This document shows positions 2,064 through 14,900 of a stretch of DNA of 64,000 bases, one piece after another; the first letter of the stretch is position 1, and each line of letters starts with the position of its first letter. Origin of the DNA: Euprymna scolopes (Eukaryota); assembly GCA_053919585.1 (NCBI GenBank), contig CM132807.1, one strand, 5' to 3'. The notes beneath the pieces were generated by a model that ran no database searches, was not told where the DNA came from, and saw only the letters and a program-made list of their open reading frames with translations. Position numbers and translations under genes: made by a program.

Positions 2064-3664
2064 CATTGGGAAAAATAAGTGTTGGACACATCCCATTATT
2101 CTTTATTTAACACATGTTTATGCAGCGAATGATGCGAACATTTAACAAAAAATAGTTACTAATTTAACAATAACAAATAACTTTAGAAATTGGAACCTTT
2201 TATTACATAACAAAAATTATATAATAAAAACGAGAATAGCCGGAAAAAAGTATTGGACACACTAACGCAATTTCATCTTATATTTAGTTGAAAACCCCAT
2301 ATTGGCTATTACAGCTTGGAGACGTTTTTTATACGACGAAACTAATTTGTGACAACGTTCAGGCGAGATTTTGGCCCACTCTTCAACATATACGTTCATC
2401 AAATCCTAAATATTACGTGGATCCCGCTGGTGGATCATGATTTTAAGATCTATCCATAGATTTTCTATAGGATTTAAGTCTGGGGACTGACTGGACCACT
2501 TAAGAACATCTATTTTGTTCTGTACGAACCAATCGGAGGTTATTTTAGCAATATGTTTGGGATCATTATCTTGTTGAAAGATCCATCCCTGTCGCATAGC
2601 TAACGCATTGGAAGCAGGCAATAGATTATTTTCAAGAATTTCCCGATATTTGGCTGCATTCATCTTTCCATCTATAATATGAGGTGGCCCAGTACCATTT
2701 GAAGAGAAGCATCCCCAGAGCATGACATTTCCACCATCAAACTTTACAGAGGGGAGGGTGTTCTTGAGATCGTGCGCTGTGCCATCTCTTCTTCATACTC
2801 GACGTACAGAGTTAATGCCGAAAAGTTCCACTTTCGTCTCATCGGACCAGATCACATTCTTCCAGTAATCATCTGTTTTCAATAAGTGGTCTCTTACAAA
2901 TTCCAGACGAGCATTAATATGACAGTTTTTTAGTAATAGTGTCTTTCGAGGTGTACGCGATTTAAGACCGTTGTGTTGAAGTACATAACTAATCGTTGGT
3001 TTCGTTACTACTATCCGCGCTTCTTCCAAATCTTTCTGAAGTTCGCCTCGTGTGGTTATTGTTGCTTCTGAACTTTTCGTACAATCTTTCTCACTGCTCG
3101 ATCCGACATCATGCGAGGAGCTCCGGTGCGCGGGCGGTTCACGATTGAGTCATGCACCTTCCATTTCCTAATAATCTTTCCTATGGTGCTTAAAGGGATG
3201 TTAAATTGAGCAGATATACGCCGATAACAAATTCCATTCTTGTGCTCGGTAATAATCCTATCACGGACAACTTGAGAGAGTTCTTTACGTTTACTCATCC
3301 TGAGAATCGTAATGGCTTACTGGTGACTAACGTGTTCCACTACTTTCCAACGACATAGAGTATGCTCTACAACAATCGAGAAACATCGAAAACGTATAAT
3401 AGTGTCGGTAAATTTAAATGCAAATAACAATTTCACGCATTATTAATAAAAAAAGGTAATAAAATATAATTTAAAACAATGTGTCCAATACTTTTTTTTT
3501 CCGGCTATTCTCGTTTATATTATATAAGTTTTGTTATGCATTAAAAGGTTCCAATTTCTAAAGTTATTTGTTATTGTTAAATCAGTAACTATTTCTTGTT
3601 AAATTTTCGCATCATTCGCTGCATAAAAATGTGTTAAATAAAGAATAATGGGATGTGTCCAACA
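2064..3664 (-). mobile_element. Tc1-family DNA transposon, IR/DR type; right end runs into a gap
   Basis: About 200-bp inverted repeats at 2064-2261 and 3480-3664+. Internal direct repeat AAGT(G/A)TTGGACACA at 2077 and 2248, mirrored on the right. TA precedes the left end. Confidence 0.95.
2280..3298 (-). pseudogene. Tc1 DD34E transposase pseudogene
   Basis: ORF pieces 3056-3298 (HTH), 2793-3029 (WSDETK) and 2406-2723 (QQDNDPKH...SPDLNPIENLW, 34 residues between D and E). Frameshift near 3058 and in-frame stops at 2793 and 2406. The C-terminus continues as EEWAKISPERCHKLVSSYKKRLQAVIANMGFSTKY. Confidence 0.95.
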
Positions 3665-5046
3665 NNNNNNNNNNNNNNNNNNNNNNNNNNNNNNNNNNNN
3701 NNNNNNNNNNNNNNNNNNNNNNNNNNNNNNNNNNNNNNNNNNNNNNNNNNNNNNNNNNNNNNNNNNNNNNNNNNNNNNNNNNNNNNNNNNNNNNNNNNNN
3801 NNNNNNNNTCTATATTGTTTATCTAAGACTGCATTAAAAATATTCCTTATTTCATGTTATTTTTTTCAATAAACCTTATAATATATTTATCTAAGCCCGA
3901 GCGAAAATATGAAAAATACGCAGAGGATGGACATTTAGACATTTATTAAATTATAAAAAAGAAATTACATGTACATTTTAAATCATCCTTTCAAAGAGCT
4001 TCTTAACTCGTTTTTTTGCGATTATCTGTGAAAACACTGACAAATAATTATTGTATAATTTAGAGTGGGCTTAGTTGCACATATAAATTTAGCGTAAGAT
4101 AATTAGTTTTTCCTGGACATCCAACTTTTAACGCAATTTACAACATTCTGTGGCACTAATTTAAAATCTGACCGACTGTGCTATAAAACTACTCGTAATC
4201 GTTTTATTATTTGCATAACCACCCAAATTTAGCGTCCGTACTACAAAAAAACATGTTTCTATGACTATTCACAATGGCAAAGTTTATACTAAATTTTCAT
4301 CAGGAACATCAACATGACCAAAGATTTAAAACAACCCAAATGGACTACATCCCGAGAACACGTCATGATCCCCAGGAGGTTTCATTTTTCGTGAACTTTA
4401 GATGCAAAACCGACATTTGATTATCTTATATATTTAGGCCGTTTACATGTAATCGCCTAAAAATAAAGAAGCATACTGTCATTTCCTCGTGGATAAGGAT
4501 TCATTATAGAATGTACTGATGACTTTATTTCTTTTGCAAAAAACATATAATTGCGAATTGACGAGAAAAGGAAAACAAGTCGCAATAATTTGTTAATAAG
4601 TTTCAATATAATCACCTTAAAAATGCCGCCGTAATCTTTTAAACAGTAGATTTATTTTTAGGGTAGGGGAATTATTGTAACCGAAGAGATAGTCTATACA
4701 TATGCGATTATTATTAACGTCATTATTATGGTAANNNNNNNNNNNNNNNNNNNNNNNNNNNNNNNNNNNNNNNNNNNNNNNNNNNNNNNNNNNNNNNNNN
4801 NNNNNNNNNNNNNNNNNNNNNNNNNNNNNNNNNNNNNNNNNNNNNNNNNNNNNNNNNNNNNNNNNNNNNNNNNNNNNNNNNNNNNNNNNNNNNNNAGGAG
4901 AATTATTATTATTATTATCATTATTGTTATTGTTATTATTATTATGAGCAGTAGTTGTAGGAGGAGGAGGAGTAAATGAAGGAGGGGGAAATAATATTTA
5001 TATTTGTCTATAATGATTTATTTCTGTTTACAGTAAAATAAATCAA

Positions 5047-7130: not shown

Positions 7131-10100
7131 TGGATTCAAAGTTCTGAAAATTAGACAATTGTTTTTAAAACGATTGCAATTTACATGTTTAGATTGAACA
7201 AAAACGCATTTTATAATGAAATATAAAATAAAGCTATTATAACGAAAAGTTATTCATGAATACATCATTTGAAATCAAAATTCTAAAAATTCCCAAAAAC
7301 GTTCATTTCAAACTAATATATAATAATAACGGTATCATTCCCTTTTACTTTTAATAGCGGTTAATTATTCTAATTGCCAGAGCAACACACAACAAACCTT
7401 ACTGGAGTATTTCGAAGATAAATAAATCTAGTTACACATATGAGTTACATACGACGTATTCGTTTTCCGGAGTATATATTTAATAGGTTTATGCGCATTT
7501 AACACTGGTTTGAAAGTCAGCATCATGTAACACCCCACGCAAAGGTAGGAGGAAATGCTTTCCCTGAAAAGATAATATTATATATGTTTATTTGTAGTAG
7601 ATTTTTAATACGATAAACTGAGTTTCTTTTCTTACTTGTGAACCAATGAGCGCCTTTGTCAGTCGATGTCGTGTGGGAGCTGACGTCATAACCAGAACAA
7701 TAATCAAAGCCCAAACAGAAGAAAACCACATCACACATCGTTGAGTAAACCACTTCTAGAACATATTTATAAATAGAATACCTAGCACACGTTTCTCTAG
7801 TGAGTGAGTATAGAAACGAATTCGATATCTAGTTGGGTGATCTCTTTTAACTTTGTCGATATTTCTATCCTTCACTCAAATCTTTGCATCAACATGTTTA
7901 CTAACCTCACAATACTTTCGTAAATAGAACTCGCTTGCTATTACAAATAAAAAAAAATGTTTTACCCTAATTGTTAACAGGCTTCCCGAATATGAAAATC
8001 ATTATAAGGAATTAGTATATATCTGAGTTACAACATGGTCGTTTTCATATATCACCAAAGTATTTTCTAGTACAAGGAATCTGTTTATATCAGTGATCAG
8101 CCTTAGTAAAATCGTAGTGTTTTCATTTTCGTTAACACTAATGTACTAATAATTCACACTTTTTAAAAAGTTATTGACGTTCATATGTTGTGATGAAATA
8201 GTAAAGATTATTCTCCTATTTTAGTTTTATATTGCTTATATTACCTATTTGTTTTCAATTTGTGGTGTTGAAGTATTGTCAACTGCCCACAAAAATATTA
8301 GAAACTGAAACAACGTGAGCAAAATAATTTGCTCAGTATTAAACATGCATTAGAAATCAGGGAAGTAGAAAGATACTGGCGCAAATGTGTCCACCATGCA
8401 TTTTAAACGGATTGTTAATCAATGTGTGATAGTAATGTAGTGCAAAGGAGATGCAGTGGTTTTATCGAAGATTTACGATAATTACGGGCAATGTATTACG
8501 GTTAAGAGGGTTTAAGGAACTGTCTACACTTTTCGACCGCGAAAAGCCTTGACAGATGACTAAGATGAAGGCGTTATCGTTTAGAGTGTTGATGGCGTAA
8601 ACTGATAATGGAAGATTGTCTCGACGTTTTTGCCTCTTATGTTGGAGGCTTTCTGTTGTTCTTTGCTGTGTTTTTGTTTTACTCTGATAAACTGATGCTC
8701 GCCTTCATGACAGTAGCTAATGTGAGAGACAATAATACCTGACACGCACAAAAAATATTAAAGATAGGAAATAACCGGTACATAACGTTGGTGTCGACCA
8801 TTAATATCGAGAAAGAGCACGTGACTTCAGAGTCTTCTGTTTAAAAATTATATCGCTCTCTCTTTTTCACTACCGGTTATTTTCTAACGCAGAAAATATT
8901 TGATAAGTACTGTACACGGGTTCTACTTTTCTGACTTTTTTTAAAATGTGTAATATCAATACAAAAAAGTTCTGTAGCTTTTTTTGGCAACATAGGATAA
9001 TACACCTCTAGTAATATAAGTAATTGACATTCTGCTTTCTTCTACCGATAGTGATTGACAATATCAGATCTTAGCTGTATTTATCTGTTTCGCGCCTTAA
9101 TGCCTGATTGATTGGTTATAATTCACTCAAACTATTTTATAACGTTAAACGATAACTGTACTGATATTCAATTAAAGTCATCGCTTATCAAGTTTAAATT
9201 CCACTCGATTATAAGGTGCATAGGTGAACATAGGTGTTATATAGGTGAATATAGGTTTTATTAGCCAGTTATCTTGGATGTTGTGTAGTGATTGATTATT
9301 TACAAGGAGGATTAAACAAGATCTTATTAAAGTTGACCTTTTAAACGACAAGAGTATATTGTGTTGGGAAACAGCACTGTTGTATTGTGATCCGCAGGGA
9401 AGTTGATCTAGCAGATCAGCTTTTCTAATCGATATTTCGTTTAGTATATAGCACAGATGGAGAGTAAGAAAACATGTTTAAGTTTGGTAGCTAAGAGAGT
9501 ATTTACTACGAAAGATTCAGAAAGAGAAGCATAGATTAAGCTCAGTCGAGCAATTGCCATGTAATAAGGTTAGAGTCGTAAGAGTTTCATTAAAGGAAAT
9601 TTAAAGAATAAACGTCTCCGACTAACCGAATCTCGGAATAGGATCAAAAAATATTTTACGATATCCTCATGAAAAGAACTAATTATAGAGTGATATCATA
9701 TTATATTTTATTTTTTTTTTGCACGGATTCTGCATATTATATTTTAAAAAGGATGTCGTGTAATTCCCACATTATGGGCGGATAATTTCTATAAAAAGTG
9801 AAGAAATCAATACTCTAGAAATCATTAAGATATGTCGATTGTTAATATATAAACAAAGATAATGTTAACTAGAATCCATGAACTAAGAGTTTTACGCACA
9901 CATATTTGCAATGTAATATTATCCCATAACTTCTCTGTGTATTCCAATTTTCTGAACTCGGAGAAAAATTATATCAGTTTGGTGTTATCTGTCTGTATAA
10001 TTAGAAAAGCGGTTGTGGTAAAAAAATAAAACGATGATTTAAATTAAAGATAGATACTGATGTTTTGGTGACAAGAAAGTTGGAATTCGTTTATTACAGA

Positions 10101-10164
10101 GGAACTCGATATTATCTTCAGAATTACCACTTTCCTTCCGTCTAGTGAAAATAATATAGTGTAT

Positions 10165-10212
<48 letters not shown>

Positions 10213-10391
10213 GTCATGCACATATATAATATATGTACAGTCATGAAAGTATATATGTATATATTAGTATATCACGATGTGTAGATAAATCAGACGTAAT
10301 ACGATATGGAAAGATAAGCGTACCAAAACATCCAAGATTTTCAATTCGATATGACTTTTGCGAAATTGTTTTGAACATAATTGTGAACACT

Positions 10392-10446
<55 letters not shown>

Positions 10447-12060
10447 GTGTCTATGTATGTATATATATATATAGAGAGAGGGAGAAAGAGTGAGAGTCAA
10501 AGAAAGAGAAAGAGACAGACAGAAAGAATGACACGCTGAGATTGAGATTGATACAAAGAGAAGAGATAGAAAATTTTGAAGGTTGACGGTAATGCTTCGA
10601 TATTAATTCTTATGTGTAAATGAAATTCATCTGTGGTTTTACTTCTAGAATGTCACTCTGATAATATTCTAAGTTTCGAATAAGTTTAAATTTTGAAACC
10701 AACAACTGAATATATGTACGTGTGTGATTGTGCGGGTTTGTGTGTCTGTGTGTGTGGATTGCTGAGAGCAAATATAATGTTTGAAAGATTGACGGAATAA
10801 TTTCGCTAGCCAGTATTATATTTTAAATGCGTAAATTATATATGTATATATATGTATGTGTGTGTGAGTGTGCGTGTGCGTGTGCGTGTCTGTGCTTGTG
10901 TGTGTGTGTGTTTGTGTTTCTGTGTGTGTGGTGACAGATAGATTGAAAGATTGGTATCACTTTTGTTCAATTGTATCGCCTGGTACTCAATACCAAGCTC
11001 TTAGTTTTTGAAGCAAATTAGATATGAGAAATATTAGGGATAGTGTTTGTAATAAGATAAGTGACGTTGATGTGTAGAATATATTTCACTCGAATATTAA
11101 AATCGGATGAAAAATTAATAGAAAATACATTTAATGATATCGTGGATAATTCATGACAAAATAAAGGTAAAAGAAAGTTTATAATAAAAAAAATATGCTT
11201 CAGGGGCAAAAAAAACGTAACACAACCTCTATTCTTACTAACAACATCGAAGCAATAAATAATTATTAGCTTGAGTAACAAAACGGCTCTAAAATTACGA
11301 AGGAGAAAAATGATAAGGTTTCAAAAAAGCGCATTGAAGAACTCCTAATTATCAAATGAAAGACATGATAATAAATGCAGTTTTAATGTTTACTTACAAG
11401 AAATTAACAAGAACTGCGTATTGGTTCACGATTACACTAGCCTACGTGATATAAATAAATATATTTTGGTACGTACGTTATTCGATGATTTACCGAGATA
11501 AGTGTGTGTTTATTCACGTAAACAACCTGCATCTAATAGAATAATCTGTTATATCTTGAACTGATCACCAGAAAAGAGTTTTACCAAACTTAATCGAAGA
11601 TCCTTGTTGAGATATAATTATGAAACAGAAACTCATATAAAATTGGCGAATAGAATTAATGGAATGAAAAAGTAAGAGAGTAAAAAAAAAAAAATAGAAA
11701 ATGCACAAATAAACTAGAATAAATCAAAAATATAATATAGAAACGCAGAAAAATCAACACGTGAATAATGAGAGTTGAAGAGATTGTAAACGTCTCAGAT
11801 AATTACACACACACACGCGCGCGCTCGTGCGTATAACTTTGCAAGTTCGATATAATTTTATGACTGACGTTGTTATTACTATCTAAATGGACACATAACG
11901 CTGTATGTAAAGAGATTTGCAGGAGAAAATAACATTTTATCAGGTGAAGAAAATTATTATTTTGTTCATTGTATACACAAGTGGCGGACAGATATTTACC
12001 ACACTGTATTTACGTTCCAAGATTTCTTTCTTTCTCGTCAGATAGCAGTCCTTTTGTCGT

Positions 12061-12083
12061 TAGCTACAATCATTTATAGTGCT
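12061..12083 (+). repeat. Left target-site-duplication-like direct repeat
   Basis: TAGCTACAATCATTTATAGTGCT versus TAGGTACAATCAGTTATAGTGCT at 13918-13940 (21/23 identical). Confidence 0.8.
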
Positions 12084-12120
12084 TGGCCTTCGGGCCATGA
12101 TCAAAATGTAGTATCTGTTC
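12081..12120 (+). ncRNA. U2 snRNA 5' fragment (divergent and truncated; head of a retroposed element)
   Basis: GCTTGGCCTTCGGGCCATGATCAAAATGTAGTATCTGTTC aligns to U2 GCUUCUCGGCCUU.UGGCUAAGAUCAA(A)GUGUAGUAUCUGUUC. Stem I is kept as UGGCC-UUCG-GGCCA and the branch-point recognition sequence GUAGUA is intact. Confidence 0.8.
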
Positions 12121-13917
12121 CGGCAGATGCTGCAAGCTATGACTAGCTATGACTAGCAAAGACCAGATGTGGGGGCAACCCCACATGCCTGACCATTAAC
12201 CAGCTCCCATTTCCCACCTCTCGGGAGCTGGTCCCCTTTTTCCCTTCTCCCTCCCTTCACTCCTCACATTAAAAATCGGCCTTGTGCCTAATTTGCTCGG
12301 TGGGGGAGCAAATAAATACCATCTGTTCCGGCAGATGCTGCAAGCTATGGCTATCTATGACTAGCTATGACTAGCAAAGACAAGATGTGGGGGCAACACC
12401 ACATGCCTGACCATTAACCAGCTCCCATTTCCCACCTCTCGGGAGCTGGTCCCCTTTTTCCCTTCCCCCTCCCTTCACTCCTCACATTAAAAATTGGTCT
12501 TGTGCCTAATTTGCTCGGTGGGGGAGCAAATAAATACCATCTGTTCCGGCAGATACTGCAAGCTATGACTAGCTATGACTAGCCAAGACCAGATGTGGGG
12601 GCAACCCCACATGCCTGACCATTAACCAGCTCCCATGTCCCACCTCTCGGGAGCTGGTCCCCTTTTTCCCTTCCCCCTCCCTTCACTCCTCACATTAAAA
12701 ATCGGCCTTGTGCCTAATTTGCTCGGTGGGGGAGCAAATAAATACCATCTGTTCCGGCAGATACTGCAAGCTATGACTAGCTATGACTAGCCAAGACCAG
12801 ATGTGGGGGCAACCCCACATGCCTGACCTTTAACCAGCTCCCATGTCCCACCTCTCGGGAACTGGTCCCCTCTTTCCATTCCCTTCACTCCTCACATTAA
12901 AAATCGGCCTTGTGCCTAATTTGCTCGGTGGGGGAGCAAATAAATACCATCTGTTCCGGCAGATGCTGCAAGCTATGGCTATCTATGACTAGCTATGACT
13001 AGCAAAGACAAGATGTGGGGGCAACCCCACATGCCTGACCATTAACCAGCTCCCATTTCCCACCTCTCGGGAGCTGGTCCCCTTTTTCCCTTCCCCCTCC
13101 CTTCACTCCTCACATTAAAAATTGGTCTTGTGCCTAATTTTCTCGGTGGGGGAGCAAATAAATACCATCTGTTCCGGCAGATACTGCAAGCTATGACTAG
13201 CTATGACTAGCCAAGACCAGATGTGGGGGCAACCCCACATGCCTGACCATTAACCAGCTCCCATGTCCCACCTCTCGGGAGCTGGTCCCCTTTTTCCCTT
13301 CCCCCTCCCTTCACTCCTCACATTAAAAATCGGCCTTGTGCCTAATTTGCTCGGTGGGGGAGCAAATAAATACCATCTGTTCCGGCAGATACTGCAAGCT
13401 ATGACTAGCTATGACTAGCAAAGACCAGATGTGGGGGCAACCCCACATGCCTGACCTTTAACCAGCTCCCATGTCCCACCTCTCGGGAACTGGTCCCCTC
13501 TTTCCATTCCCTTCACTCCTCACATTAAAAATCGGCCTTGTGCCTAATTTGCTCGGTGGGGGAGCAAATAAATACCATCTGTTCCGGCAGATACTGCAAG
13601 CAAAGACCAGATGTGGGGGCAACCCCACATAGCTGACCTTTAACCAGCTCCCATTTCCCACCTCTCGGGAGCTGGTCCCCTGTTTCCCTTCCCCCTCCCT
13701 TCACTCCTCACATTAAAAATTGGCCTTGTGCCTAATTTGCTCGGTGGGGGAGCAAATAAATACCATCTGTTCTTCAGATGCTGCACTTCCATTTCTTGTT
13801 CTCTTTCGGTGGAGGAGAAATCCTTCACGACTGAGACAATTTTTATTTTTGTACCTTTTCTCCACGTTAAAAAACGACCCTGGTGTCTAACTCTGTCCCG
13901 TGGGGAGGCATTGTAAA
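12084..13917 (+). mobile_element. U2-headed composite retroposed insertion: U2 fragment, 8 tandem units and a unique ~150-bp tail
   Basis: Bounded by the 19-23 bp direct repeat. GC-rich relative to its flanks and non-coding. Confidence 0.7.
12114..13765 (+). repeat. Tandem array of eight 188-218 bp structured units
   Basis: Units start (TCTGTTC) at 12114, 12322, 12540, 12748, 12950, 13168, 13376 and 13578. Lengths are 208, 218, 208, 202, 218, 208, 202 and 188 bp. Confidence 0.97.
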
Positions 13918-13940
13918 TAGGTACAATCAGTTATAGTGCT
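13918..13940 (+). repeat. Right target-site-duplication-like direct repeat
   Basis: Matches 12061-12083. Confidence 0.8.
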
Positions 13941-14399
13941 GCCATATCTAACTCACATTTGAAGTGCTAGTAAGAAATGGAAGACACACGTGCGGTTCCA
14001 GTATAACTTTCAAATCGCCACGCGTTTTTTTTCTTTTTCTTGGCTTCCTATACTTTTTTCGATTTAATACTTGTGCACTCCTTTTATTCCGTGATTGTCC
14101 CGTTCAAATGATTATGCAATGTCAACGCGGAACGTGAGTTATCAGTTTCCGTGCGTTGTCTTCACCGTTTAATGGCGAAGCTAAACTACATTACATATGA
14201 AATAGGTTACACTAACGATTTTAATAGAAAATAAATCGTTACTTTTATATTCGGGTGAACAAGTGTAATTAACATTTGCTCATACATATTAACTGTTTTA
14301 TAATTTTATTTATAATACACTATCTCTTAACTGAAAAAAATAAAACCTAATATTTAGATCTTTCAGAATATGGTTTAACTTTTAGTGTAATTTTCACAA

Positions 14400-14900
14400 T
14401 GTGTCTTCGATGTTATCCCATATCATTTGCAAGTGTATCTGAACTCGCTAATACATTTGTCGTATTTGTGATTCCGCATGCTTAGAGTCAGATGCGACAG
14501 TCTCAACAGTTTTACCGCTTCTGGCCTTTGAAGTGTTGCATAAATAGTGTGGTTTACGTCTATGAAGACAACTGAACTTAGAATGGCATTTGATAGATCA
14601 CTGAGAAAGATATAAAGATAGTTGAACACAGCTTTGGTCATTTGAGCCGAGGACGTCTGCCCATTGCCGACTACAGATCTAACCTATTAGGGAAGTAGGA
14701 TTTAATATTTTAGACGACTGATCCATATGTGTCAAAGTTTCTTCTAAAGTAAGTATTTATACCAAATTCTGTCAAACCCCTTTTGATATGTCGAGAAATA
14801 TTGCCCTTGAGAGAAATTTTGCATCGATAAATATTCCGATCCTATGTGAATTTATAGTTCATACACAAATTCTATGCCTCGAATAGCGTAAATTATATTG
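14400..14900 (-). mobile_element. Decayed CR1/L2-group LINE reverse transcriptase fragment
   Basis: Minus-strand fragments RAIFLDISKG.FDRIWYKYLL, IKSYFPNR, VGNGQTSS and YIFLSDLSNAI. Confidence 0.65.

Follow-up and report, generated by a model that had tools for sequence, protein, structure and literature searches.

A U2 snRNA-headed composite retroposon of Euprymna scolopes and a possible route to its stacked tandem units

The window studied here is a stretch of 64,000 nucleotides (nt) from the mollusc Euprymna scolopes (assembly GCA_053919585.1, contig CM132807.1), and window coordinates are positions within this stretch. Its segment 12065-13940, read within 11600-14400, is a single composite in which one copy of a target-site duplication (TSD), a truncated head derived from U2 small nuclear RNA (snRNA), eight units of a family designated A, a terminal element of a second family, C, and the other TSD copy follow one another (Table 1). 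A mollusc retroposon that is very abundant and includes a U2 snRNA fragment is represented here by one copy, and this copy is not a gene. We favour, with moderate confidence, the view that it is a layered retroposon in which the C family dispersed a U2 landing site, U2-specific machinery stacked A units on that site, and a 628-bp duplication came last. For a tandem repeat, this would be an uncommon mode of origin.

Tandem Repeats Finder describes an array at 12113-13772 with a period of 208, 8.0 copies, 91% matches and a score of 2692. There are exactly nine occurrences of the motif TCTGTTC (starting at 12114, 12322, 12540, 12748, 12950, 13168, 13376, 13578, and 13766), and the eight A units measure, in order, 208, 218, 208, 202, 218, 208, 202, and 188 bp. 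All eight terminate in GCAAATAAATACCA, and their tail box GGCCTTGTGCCTAATTT starts at 12278, 12496, 12704, 12906, 13124, 13332, 13534, and 13722. Genome-wide, a 10-bp sequence, AGCTATGACT, present in 0-3 copies near the start of A units, sets length classes of 188, 198, 208, and 218 bp. Within the composite, such repeats are seen at 12343-12375 and 12971-13003. The terminal C element has a body that differs from that of the A units and a related leader and tail; its private changes amount to 0/144. At the borders of the composite (12065-12083 and 13922-13940), contigs from a DNA run break off and resume.

The first-pass annotation of this DNA, made from its letters, had noticed nine TCTGTTC junctions and units that start at the U2 site GTAGTA/TCTGTTC. 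This observation is confirmed, and the interpretation given to it is partly supported. A later amplification, which it suspected, is evident in units 2-4 and 5-7, a three-unit duplication of 628 bp with 3 mismatches and a unit-by-unit pairwise divergence of 0-0.9%. The last junction, which was taken to continue as in real U2, instead reads TCTGTTCTTCAGATG, the leader of the C family (at least 29,000 copies); authentic U2 reads TCTGTTCTTATCAG at this point, and the agreement ends after TT. The last segment had been regarded as a possible second family of U2-targeting elements. It does represent a separate family, but one that is U2-headed and not U2-targeted, since its 3' ends adjoin unique DNA.

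Table 1. Components of the composite, with window coordinates.
Feature	Position	Strand	Basis or remark
TSD, left copy, 19 bp, TACAATCATTTATAGTGCT	12065..12083		recurs with 1 mismatch at 13922-13940
U2 snRNA-derived head, 5'-truncated, U2 nt 10-46 (numbering of this genome), ends GTAGTA/TCTGTTC	12084..12120	+	cmscan and alignment
Inverted repeat over the landing site: U2 TGTAGTATCTG (12107-12117) with leader CAGATGCTGCA (12124-12134), loop TTCCGG	12107..12134	+	RNAfold
A unit 1, 208 bp, adjoins the head	12114..12321	+	TCTGTTC boundaries
3' tail module of A units: box GGCCTTGTGCCTAATTT, short GC hairpin, then AAATAAATACCA	12278..12321	+	present in all A units
A units 2-4, 218/208/202 bp	12322..12949	+	TCTGTTC boundaries
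A units 5-7, 628-bp local duplicate of units 2-4	12950..13577	+	3 mismatches/628 bp
A unit 8, 188 bp, without 10-bp AGCTATGACT repeats	13578..13765	+	sequence reading
Terminal C-family element, 156 bp, ends GTAAATAGG	13766..13921	+	C family 3' end
TSD, right copy, TACAATCAGTTATAGTGCT	13922..13940		unique flank resumes here in independent DNA-run contig

Microsatellites of the types (TA)n, (CA)n, and (TG)n at 10165-10930, about 1-2 kb upstream of the composite, are apparently unrelated to it.

The U2 piece of the composite does not represent a U2 gene. In the part preceding the first TCTGTTC it agrees with nt 12-46 of real U2 at 30 of 35 positions, and in a cmscan search against RF00004 it obtains 22 bits (E=0.1) at a cut-off of 46, nearly all of this score stemming from model positions 1-46, whereas authentic U2 genes reach 161 bits. 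Two of its bases, T12098 and A12106, are private to this head, 90-98% of the family reads differing there. Throughout the whole 64-kb window no Rfam family attains its gathering score, and matches to tRNA, 7SL, or 5S at the Rfam cut-off are absent from it. Genome counts, here and below, come from exact-pattern searches of the 5.9-Gb assembly that included control patterns. The U2 site with its authentic downstream sequence has 1,190 exact matches, almost all of them in one array near the end of contig C9, which contains more than 1,000 copies of real U2 at a tandem period of 764 bp. This array lies at about 168.87-169.13 Mb of C9 (loci L037-L065).

A cluster of functional variant U2-like genes, or of genes for another structured small RNA, is an extremely improbable explanation of the composite. 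In its favour, cmscan aligns unit 1 across the whole U2 model and several hairpins are found in the units. However, this alignment stays below the cut-off and the score all comes from nt 1-46, unit bodies match U2 nt 47-195 no better than shuffled controls, and an Sm site is lacking. Furthermore, RNA reads fall on both strands without unit-length starts or ends, and the composite is flanked by a TSD and belongs to a family dispersed at very high copy number.

A-type units are dispersed over all large contigs with identities of 96-100%. The anatomy of arrays was drawn from 28 loci fetched around dispersed units; these arrays nearly always open with the same U2 head, truncated to a variable extent at its 5' side, and are mosaics in which three or more families of units can be told apart: A, with 188-218 bp; B, with 183 or 194 bp; and D, with 210 bp. 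Units of the three families have a common leader, TCTGTTCCGGCAGATRCTGCA, and a common 3' module, and their bodies are unrelated. At the 3' side, arrays are usually closed by C, by E, by F, or by the 5' end of a long interspersed nuclear element (LINE), and whole arrays elsewhere in the genome are bracketed by TSDs of 8-18 bp. Mini-units of 33-45 bp are seen between two U2 heads in three loci (L017 at about 640-700, L026 at about 1380-1500, and L020 at 3070-3115) and could have arisen through extreme internal deletion or from insertions that were aborted.

The 3' end of A, B, and D units, GCAAATAAATACC, has 63,303 matches versus 223 for its control. What follows such ends was tallied for the first 100 matches, all of them on contig C1, the A/B/D tally being made by hand. 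A/B/D ends are followed by (A)TCTGTTC and a leader in 74 of these 100 cases (56 with a leader of A/B/D type, 17 with one of C type, and 1 with one of LINE type), by a U2 head from other positions (nt 1 or nt 26-28) in 12, by a 5'-truncated unit in 3, and by unique DNA in 11. By this tally, A/B/D units almost never occur alone in ordinary DNA, whereas C elements do sit alone. The start points at nt 1 and nt 26/27 begin with ATC or TC, like the nt-39/40 site. A pattern consisting of a 32-nt U2 head plus 3 nt has 9,936 matches (about 1,190 of them in real U2 genes) versus 0 for the control and continues, in the first 100, with a C leader (59), an A/B/D leader (22), TTA (13), or other sequence (6). 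For the C 3' end there are 28,956 exact matches versus 6 for the control; unique DNA follows it throughout the first 100, and C closes many arrays. A/B/D and C together amount to at least 90,000 units, or about 0.3% of the genome. The 3' flanks of C read TAC in about three quarters of cases or else AAC, often extended to TACAAT, and the TSDs begin with TACA; from this pattern it seems that C and the A/B/D units differ in their preference for targets or for priming.

The relationships among units bear on whether the composite is an ordinary satellite, in which unequal crossing-over or replication slippage would have multiplied one unit at its site and the resemblance of the start to U2 would be incidental. 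We consider this very improbable, even if the near-perfect 628-bp duplicate and the differing copy number of AGCTATGACT among units would suit it. Apart from this duplicate, units are no closer within arrays than across chromosomes (divergence of 2.8% within arrays versus 3.1% between arrays), and the nearest relatives of an array's units scatter across other arrays. In the present composite, unit 1, which has the fewest private changes (1/204), finds its nearest relative in another array (99.5% identity to a unit in L018), and the best match outside the duplicate of each of units 2-4 also sits in another array. Moreover, unrelated bodies, namely those of A, B, D, C, and the 5' ends of LINEs, are joined through the same 7-nt junction, and tens of thousands of dispersed arrays open with the U2 head. 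Satellite amplification accounts for the 628-bp duplicate only and is contradicted as the main cause.

The array of real U2 genes houses LINEs that resemble the units at both ends. Breaks in its 764-bp periodicity correspond to insertions of 7.1-7.6 kb (L061-L064) with two intact open reading frames (ORFs). ORF1 (766-880 amino acids) contains zf-CCHC, and ORF2 (1,145-1,149 amino acids) combines Exo_endo_phos, RVT_1, and zf-RVT, i.e., an N-terminal apurinic/apyrimidinic endonuclease (APE) domain at residues 8-229 (PF03372, E=2e-15), a reverse transcriptase (RT) domain (PF00078, E=6.5e-31), and PF13966 (E=1.3e-7). At the 5' junction, U2 nt 1-46 end in GTAGTATCTGTTC and are followed by the leader TCAGTGC. 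At the other side, LINE ends of the type AAATACC or AAATAA pass into U2 at nt 1 (3 copies) or nt 25 (1 copy), and the 3' untranslated regions comprise GGCCTTGTGCCTAATTT or GGCCTTTGTGCCTAAGTT, a hairpin, and an AAATA-rich end; the units have this same module. The variant GGTCAAG, typical of dispersed heads, is present in two of the four LINE-interrupted heads of the U2 array.

Keno elements are U2 snRNA gene-specific retrotransposons without long terminal repeats (non-LTR) of the Tx1 clade (Kojima and Fujiwara, 2004, as cited in PMC4640811 and PMC4494074), and Utopia elements are U2-targeting non-LTR elements with a restriction-like PD..D/ExK endonuclease (PMC4640811). Judged by their domains, the U2-array LINEs have an L1/Tx1-type architecture, and as this combination of APE, RT, and zf-RVT coincides with residence in U2, we assign them as Keno-like. 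For Utopia, the downstream flank in U2 starts from nt 39, and the 3' flank of Keno is identical (PMC4640811). The published nt 39 is the T of TCTGTTC and corresponds to nt 40 here, this U2 having one extra A; the junction ACCA/TCTGTTC of the units coincides with the published Keno/Utopia cleavage site. The first-pass annotation had named Utopia or Keno as possible partners and had proposed a comparison of their termini with those of the unit. The units and the U2-array LINEs do share a 5' junction at TCTGTTC as well as a 3' box, GGCCTTGTGCCTAA. The LINEs found have an APE endonuclease of the Keno/Tx1-like kind, and the partner would not be of the Utopia type.

The LINE 5' junction is found 107 times genome-wide, and 10 of these 107 fall in the U2 array of about 1 Mb, an enrichment of about 500-fold. 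Many of the remaining junctions are in head-to-tail pairs or runs of 7-8 kb. Spacings of 6.7-8.4 kb are seen, for example, on C9 at 149.47-149.57 Mb and on C38 at 0.51-0.53 Mb; given this recurrence, autonomous elements are also stacked head-to-tail outside the U2 array. A large protein search retrieved only unnamed relatives of at most 62% identity. A relative with a 60% identical ORF2, in another public assembly (L068), forms exact head-to-tail tandems. At its junctions (2838-3669 and 9346-10177) U2 sequence is absent; the 3' box there, GGCCATGTGCCACAATTTTTG, is a related one, and the start, TCAGTATACTGA, is palindromic. A related LINE contig, L067, contains no U2 sequence.

According to the layered reading, three steps would have produced the composite. 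In the first, to which the TSD and the behaviour of the family point, a C-family RNA starting with U2 nt ~1-46 would have inserted by target-primed reverse transcription, making the 19-bp TSD and bringing along a copy of GTAGTA/TCTGTTC; the terminal C element is probably this original insertion, which brought in the U2 head. In the second, for which junction statistics, LINE anatomy, and layering argue, a Keno-like machinery of APE and RT, whose normal landing point in U2 is this site, would have made a nick in the head's copy of it, and non-autonomous A units of about 200 bp would have been reverse-transcribed into the nicked site, being recognised through their 3' module (GGCCTTGTGCCTAA box, hairpin, and AAATACC). 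Each such event would keep U2 nt 1-39 upstream and duplicate TCTGTTC. As the head is kept and the motif duplicated, the site would be renewed and the next unit would enter before the previous one. This would yield a head-to-tail stack of about five units from about five insertion events or fewer. The third step can be read from the composite itself, a three-unit block of 628 bp having been duplicated locally. Units would have no need of a promoter of their own because TCTGTTC and the homology of the head would set the 5' junction, so that read-through RNAs might suffice.

The serial insertion into U2 that the first-pass annotation had proposed thus holds in part: the unit behaves as a non-autonomous element landing at the U2 site, as the 74 of 100 junctions indicate, but the target is not a U2 gene. 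At this locus it would be the 5'-truncated head borne by C, the whole composite lying in one 19-bp TSD. Single units followed by authentic U2 3' sequence, for which it had suggested looking, are essentially absent, with one match genome-wide.

The age of the families and their positions in arrays agree with this layered reading. Private divergence is 0.44% for B, 1.1% for A, and 2.0% for D, and a comparison of ordered pairs within 18 head-anchored arrays finds the younger of two families on the 5' side in 101 pairs and on the 3' side in 19 (permutation p<1e-4). Ten arrays start with B, only one ends with B, and five end with D, and arrays appear to grow at the head end. Layering with B 5' of A and A 5' of D is predicted by serial insertion at the head side and is what is seen; likewise, a head upstream, a C element downstream with its own TSD, and mosaic arrays are expected under serial target-primed insertion. 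Certain blocks of several units, among them B183-B194-A218 and A198-B194-A218-A20x, turn up in more than one array. They suggest that several units were at times inserted together, which would be expected of read-through RNAs acting as templates with a 5' junction set by TCTGTTC and head homology.

Such recurrence would also suit a different history, in which the stack was built elsewhere by serial insertion at the U2 site of a master copy, perhaps one located behind a U2 promoter, and was then retrotransposed to this locus as one long C-primed RNA. We think this rather unlikely. It would explain why one TSD surrounds the entire composite and why the C element and the head are no older than the units; the finding of the same blocks in different arrays and the transcription of the family seen in RNA-seq data are also in line with it. 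However, the overall order is identical in no two of about 18 head-anchored arrays, and neighbouring units have their nearest relatives in different arrays. Shared blocks, where they exist, are at the 5' side of arrays whose 3' ends differ, whereas a common RNA truncated at 5' would leave the reverse pattern. In addition, the head is almost complete in nearly all arrays of 0.4-3 kb, and long RNAs mobilised by LINEs would not be expected to retain it.

Several observations weigh against the layered reading. The recurrent multi-unit blocks mean that not each unit represents a separate event. U2 genes make up about 3% of all sites and yet are without units: a search for units at the canonical site in authentic U2 genes gave one genome-wide match, with a non-GTA context before TCTGTTCTTATCAGCTT. 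The 3' junctions of LINEs in the U2 array are at nt 1 or nt 25 and not at nt 40, and a LINE with the exact A/B/D tail GCTCGGTGGGGGAGCAAATAAATACC was not recovered among the LINEs read. Within families, a gradient of age with position is not significant (rho 0.18, p 0.2), and the C element of the composite is not measurably older than its A units, which show 0.5-2.5% private changes. The empty U2 genes and the LINE junctions at nt 1/25 could be due to purging by selection together with concerted evolution, or to an endonuclease that prefers occupied sites.

Real U2 genes devoid of units would be accounted for if arrays were concatemers made in single events, RT switching templates from a C RNA to the 3' ends of unit RNAs by way of ATC/TC microhomology and lastly to a head-bearing RNA. 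It is consistent with this proposal that ATC or TC stands at the switch point in all junction classes (U2 nt 1, 26/27, and 39/40) and that 3 of 100 unit ends adjoin 5'-truncated units, and template switching has been invoked for the recurrent 5' additions of SINEU, a group of crocodilian retroposons discussed below (Kojima, 2015; PMC4494074). Nevertheless, we judge it unlikely to a considerable degree: every internal template would have to end exactly at U2 nt 40, without known reason, the age-ordered layers of B, A, and D are not predicted, and the coincidence with the Keno/Utopia cleavage site and the approximately 500-fold enrichment of LINEs would be left unexplained.

The leader that follows the landing site is antisense to U2. 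Beyond the loop, it opens with 11-14 nt that are reverse-complementary to U2 nt ~30-43, including the branch-point-recognition sequence GUAGUA, and in families A, B, and C head and leader form a hairpin of 12-14 bp with -17.7 to -22.3 kcal/mol (RNAfold) and with z-scores of the duplex versus shuffled leaders of -4.4 to -8.0. Leaders of families E and F and of one LINE pair with GUAGUA in other registers, and those of LINE61 and LINE62 pair weakly. An antisense leader is present at the same position of every unit junction and, with differing registers, in five element families or more; rare chimeric leaders exist (L007). A 14-bp TSD produced by symmetric nicks in the palindrome was rejected as a rule, as unit 8 keeps the CGG leader before the TT leader of C. 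The recurrence in different registers suggests that the antisense leader has a function. One may speculate that it provides a recognition structure formed only in the co-transcript, masks the pairing sequence of U2, or is a feature of the DNA target. As a tentative possibility, C might have spread U2 landing sites by tens of thousands and so have turned a gene-specific LINE into a genome-wide array builder, with the antisense leader being required. A required leader could make occupied sites better targets than real U2 genes or could act as a signal in the co-transcript.

Family sequence is contained in RNA runs that bear the label 'mollusc metagenome'. Reads of two poly(A) RNA-seq runs cover both strands of the family, most deeply over C, and those in which the head passes straight into C are common; the reads of these two runs show neither discrete starts or ends at unit length nor poly(A) tails. 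This pattern fits passive read-through transcription and is uninformative on source copies. About 300-400 reads per run have the same 30-nt sequence (agreement 0.93) directly upstream of a head whose start is at 12083, which reflects either a single copy elsewhere with high expression or a subfamily extended at its 5' side.

Among known systems, Keno is similar in that the U2-array LINEs have APE and RT domains (with zf-RVT) and are sited in the GTAGTA/TCTGTTC region of U2, and in that the 3' ends of the non-autonomous units adjoin U2 from TCTGTTC in 74 of 100 cases. Keno has been reported from lancelet, cnidarians, and vertebrates; the present system differs in having a mollusc as host, in the 3' junctions at nt 1 or 25 of the four LINE copies that were read in the U2 array, and in that most copies are outside U2 genes, on U2 fragments borne by retroposons. 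Utopia uses the same U2 site, with a 3' flank from nt 39, and Utopia-1_NVit occasionally occurs in tandem in U2 genes (PMC4640811). The U2-resident LINEs here differ from it by having an N-terminal APE and not a restriction-like endonuclease, a statement made for these LINEs, as no genome-wide search for Utopia-like ORFs was made.

The SINEU elements are U1/U2 snRNA-headed short interspersed nuclear elements (SINEs) of crocodilians mobilised by Tx1-Mar (Kojima, 2015; PMC4494074). Like them, the present elements are short non-coding retroposons with a U2 5' head (here nt 10-46, in other copies up to nt ~1), and they may likewise be mobilised by Tx1-type LINEs with snRNA-derived 5' ends. Frequent tandems, recurrent additions at the 5' side, and the lack of an internal promoter are further common traits. 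However, SINEU ends in poly(A), whereas the units end in AAATACC(A) and C in AAATAGG(TAC), without A-runs. SINEU also targets a Mariner transposon, is old (83-92% identity), and has been found in crocodilians only; the copies found here are young (97-100% alike), number at least 90,000 units, and have a head that is itself the landing site, leading to long mixed stacks. An internally deleted U2 of the SINEU-3 type was rejected as the origin of the units, whose bodies score no higher than shuffles against U2 nt 47-195.

R1 and R2 are LINEs specific for a target in ribosomal DNA that rely on the promoter of this target, and their RNA carries target sequence that aids precise junctions; head-to-tail insertions in the multicopy RNA gene also occur. 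They differ from the elements described here in target gene and in LINE clade, and they do not spread their target site on a second retroposon. Classical SINEs differ as well, since an internal RNA polymerase III promoter is lacking here and the head stems from U2, a gene transcribed by RNA polymerase II from an external promoter. Full-text literature searches found no report of U2-headed retroposons from a mollusc or cephalopod.

For annotation, such arrays should not be labelled as U2 genes, U2 pseudogenes, or plain satellites. The composite and its family extend snRNA-headed retroposons, hitherto known from crocodilians only, to a mollusc, in which they are young and very abundant. They bear on a question left open by Kojima (2015), namely the formation and mobilisation of SINE-like elements with an snRNA head. 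Such a head would be a piece of the target that is transcribed along with the element and retained both as homology defining the junction and as a target. If the antisense leader was indeed needed for the spread of landing sites, about 100,000 expressed copies might titrate or mimic pairing partners of U2. An element carrying the target site of its partner would amount to a self-renewing landing pad and would provide a specific, testable way in which site-specific retrotransposition could give rise to satellite-like tandem DNA.

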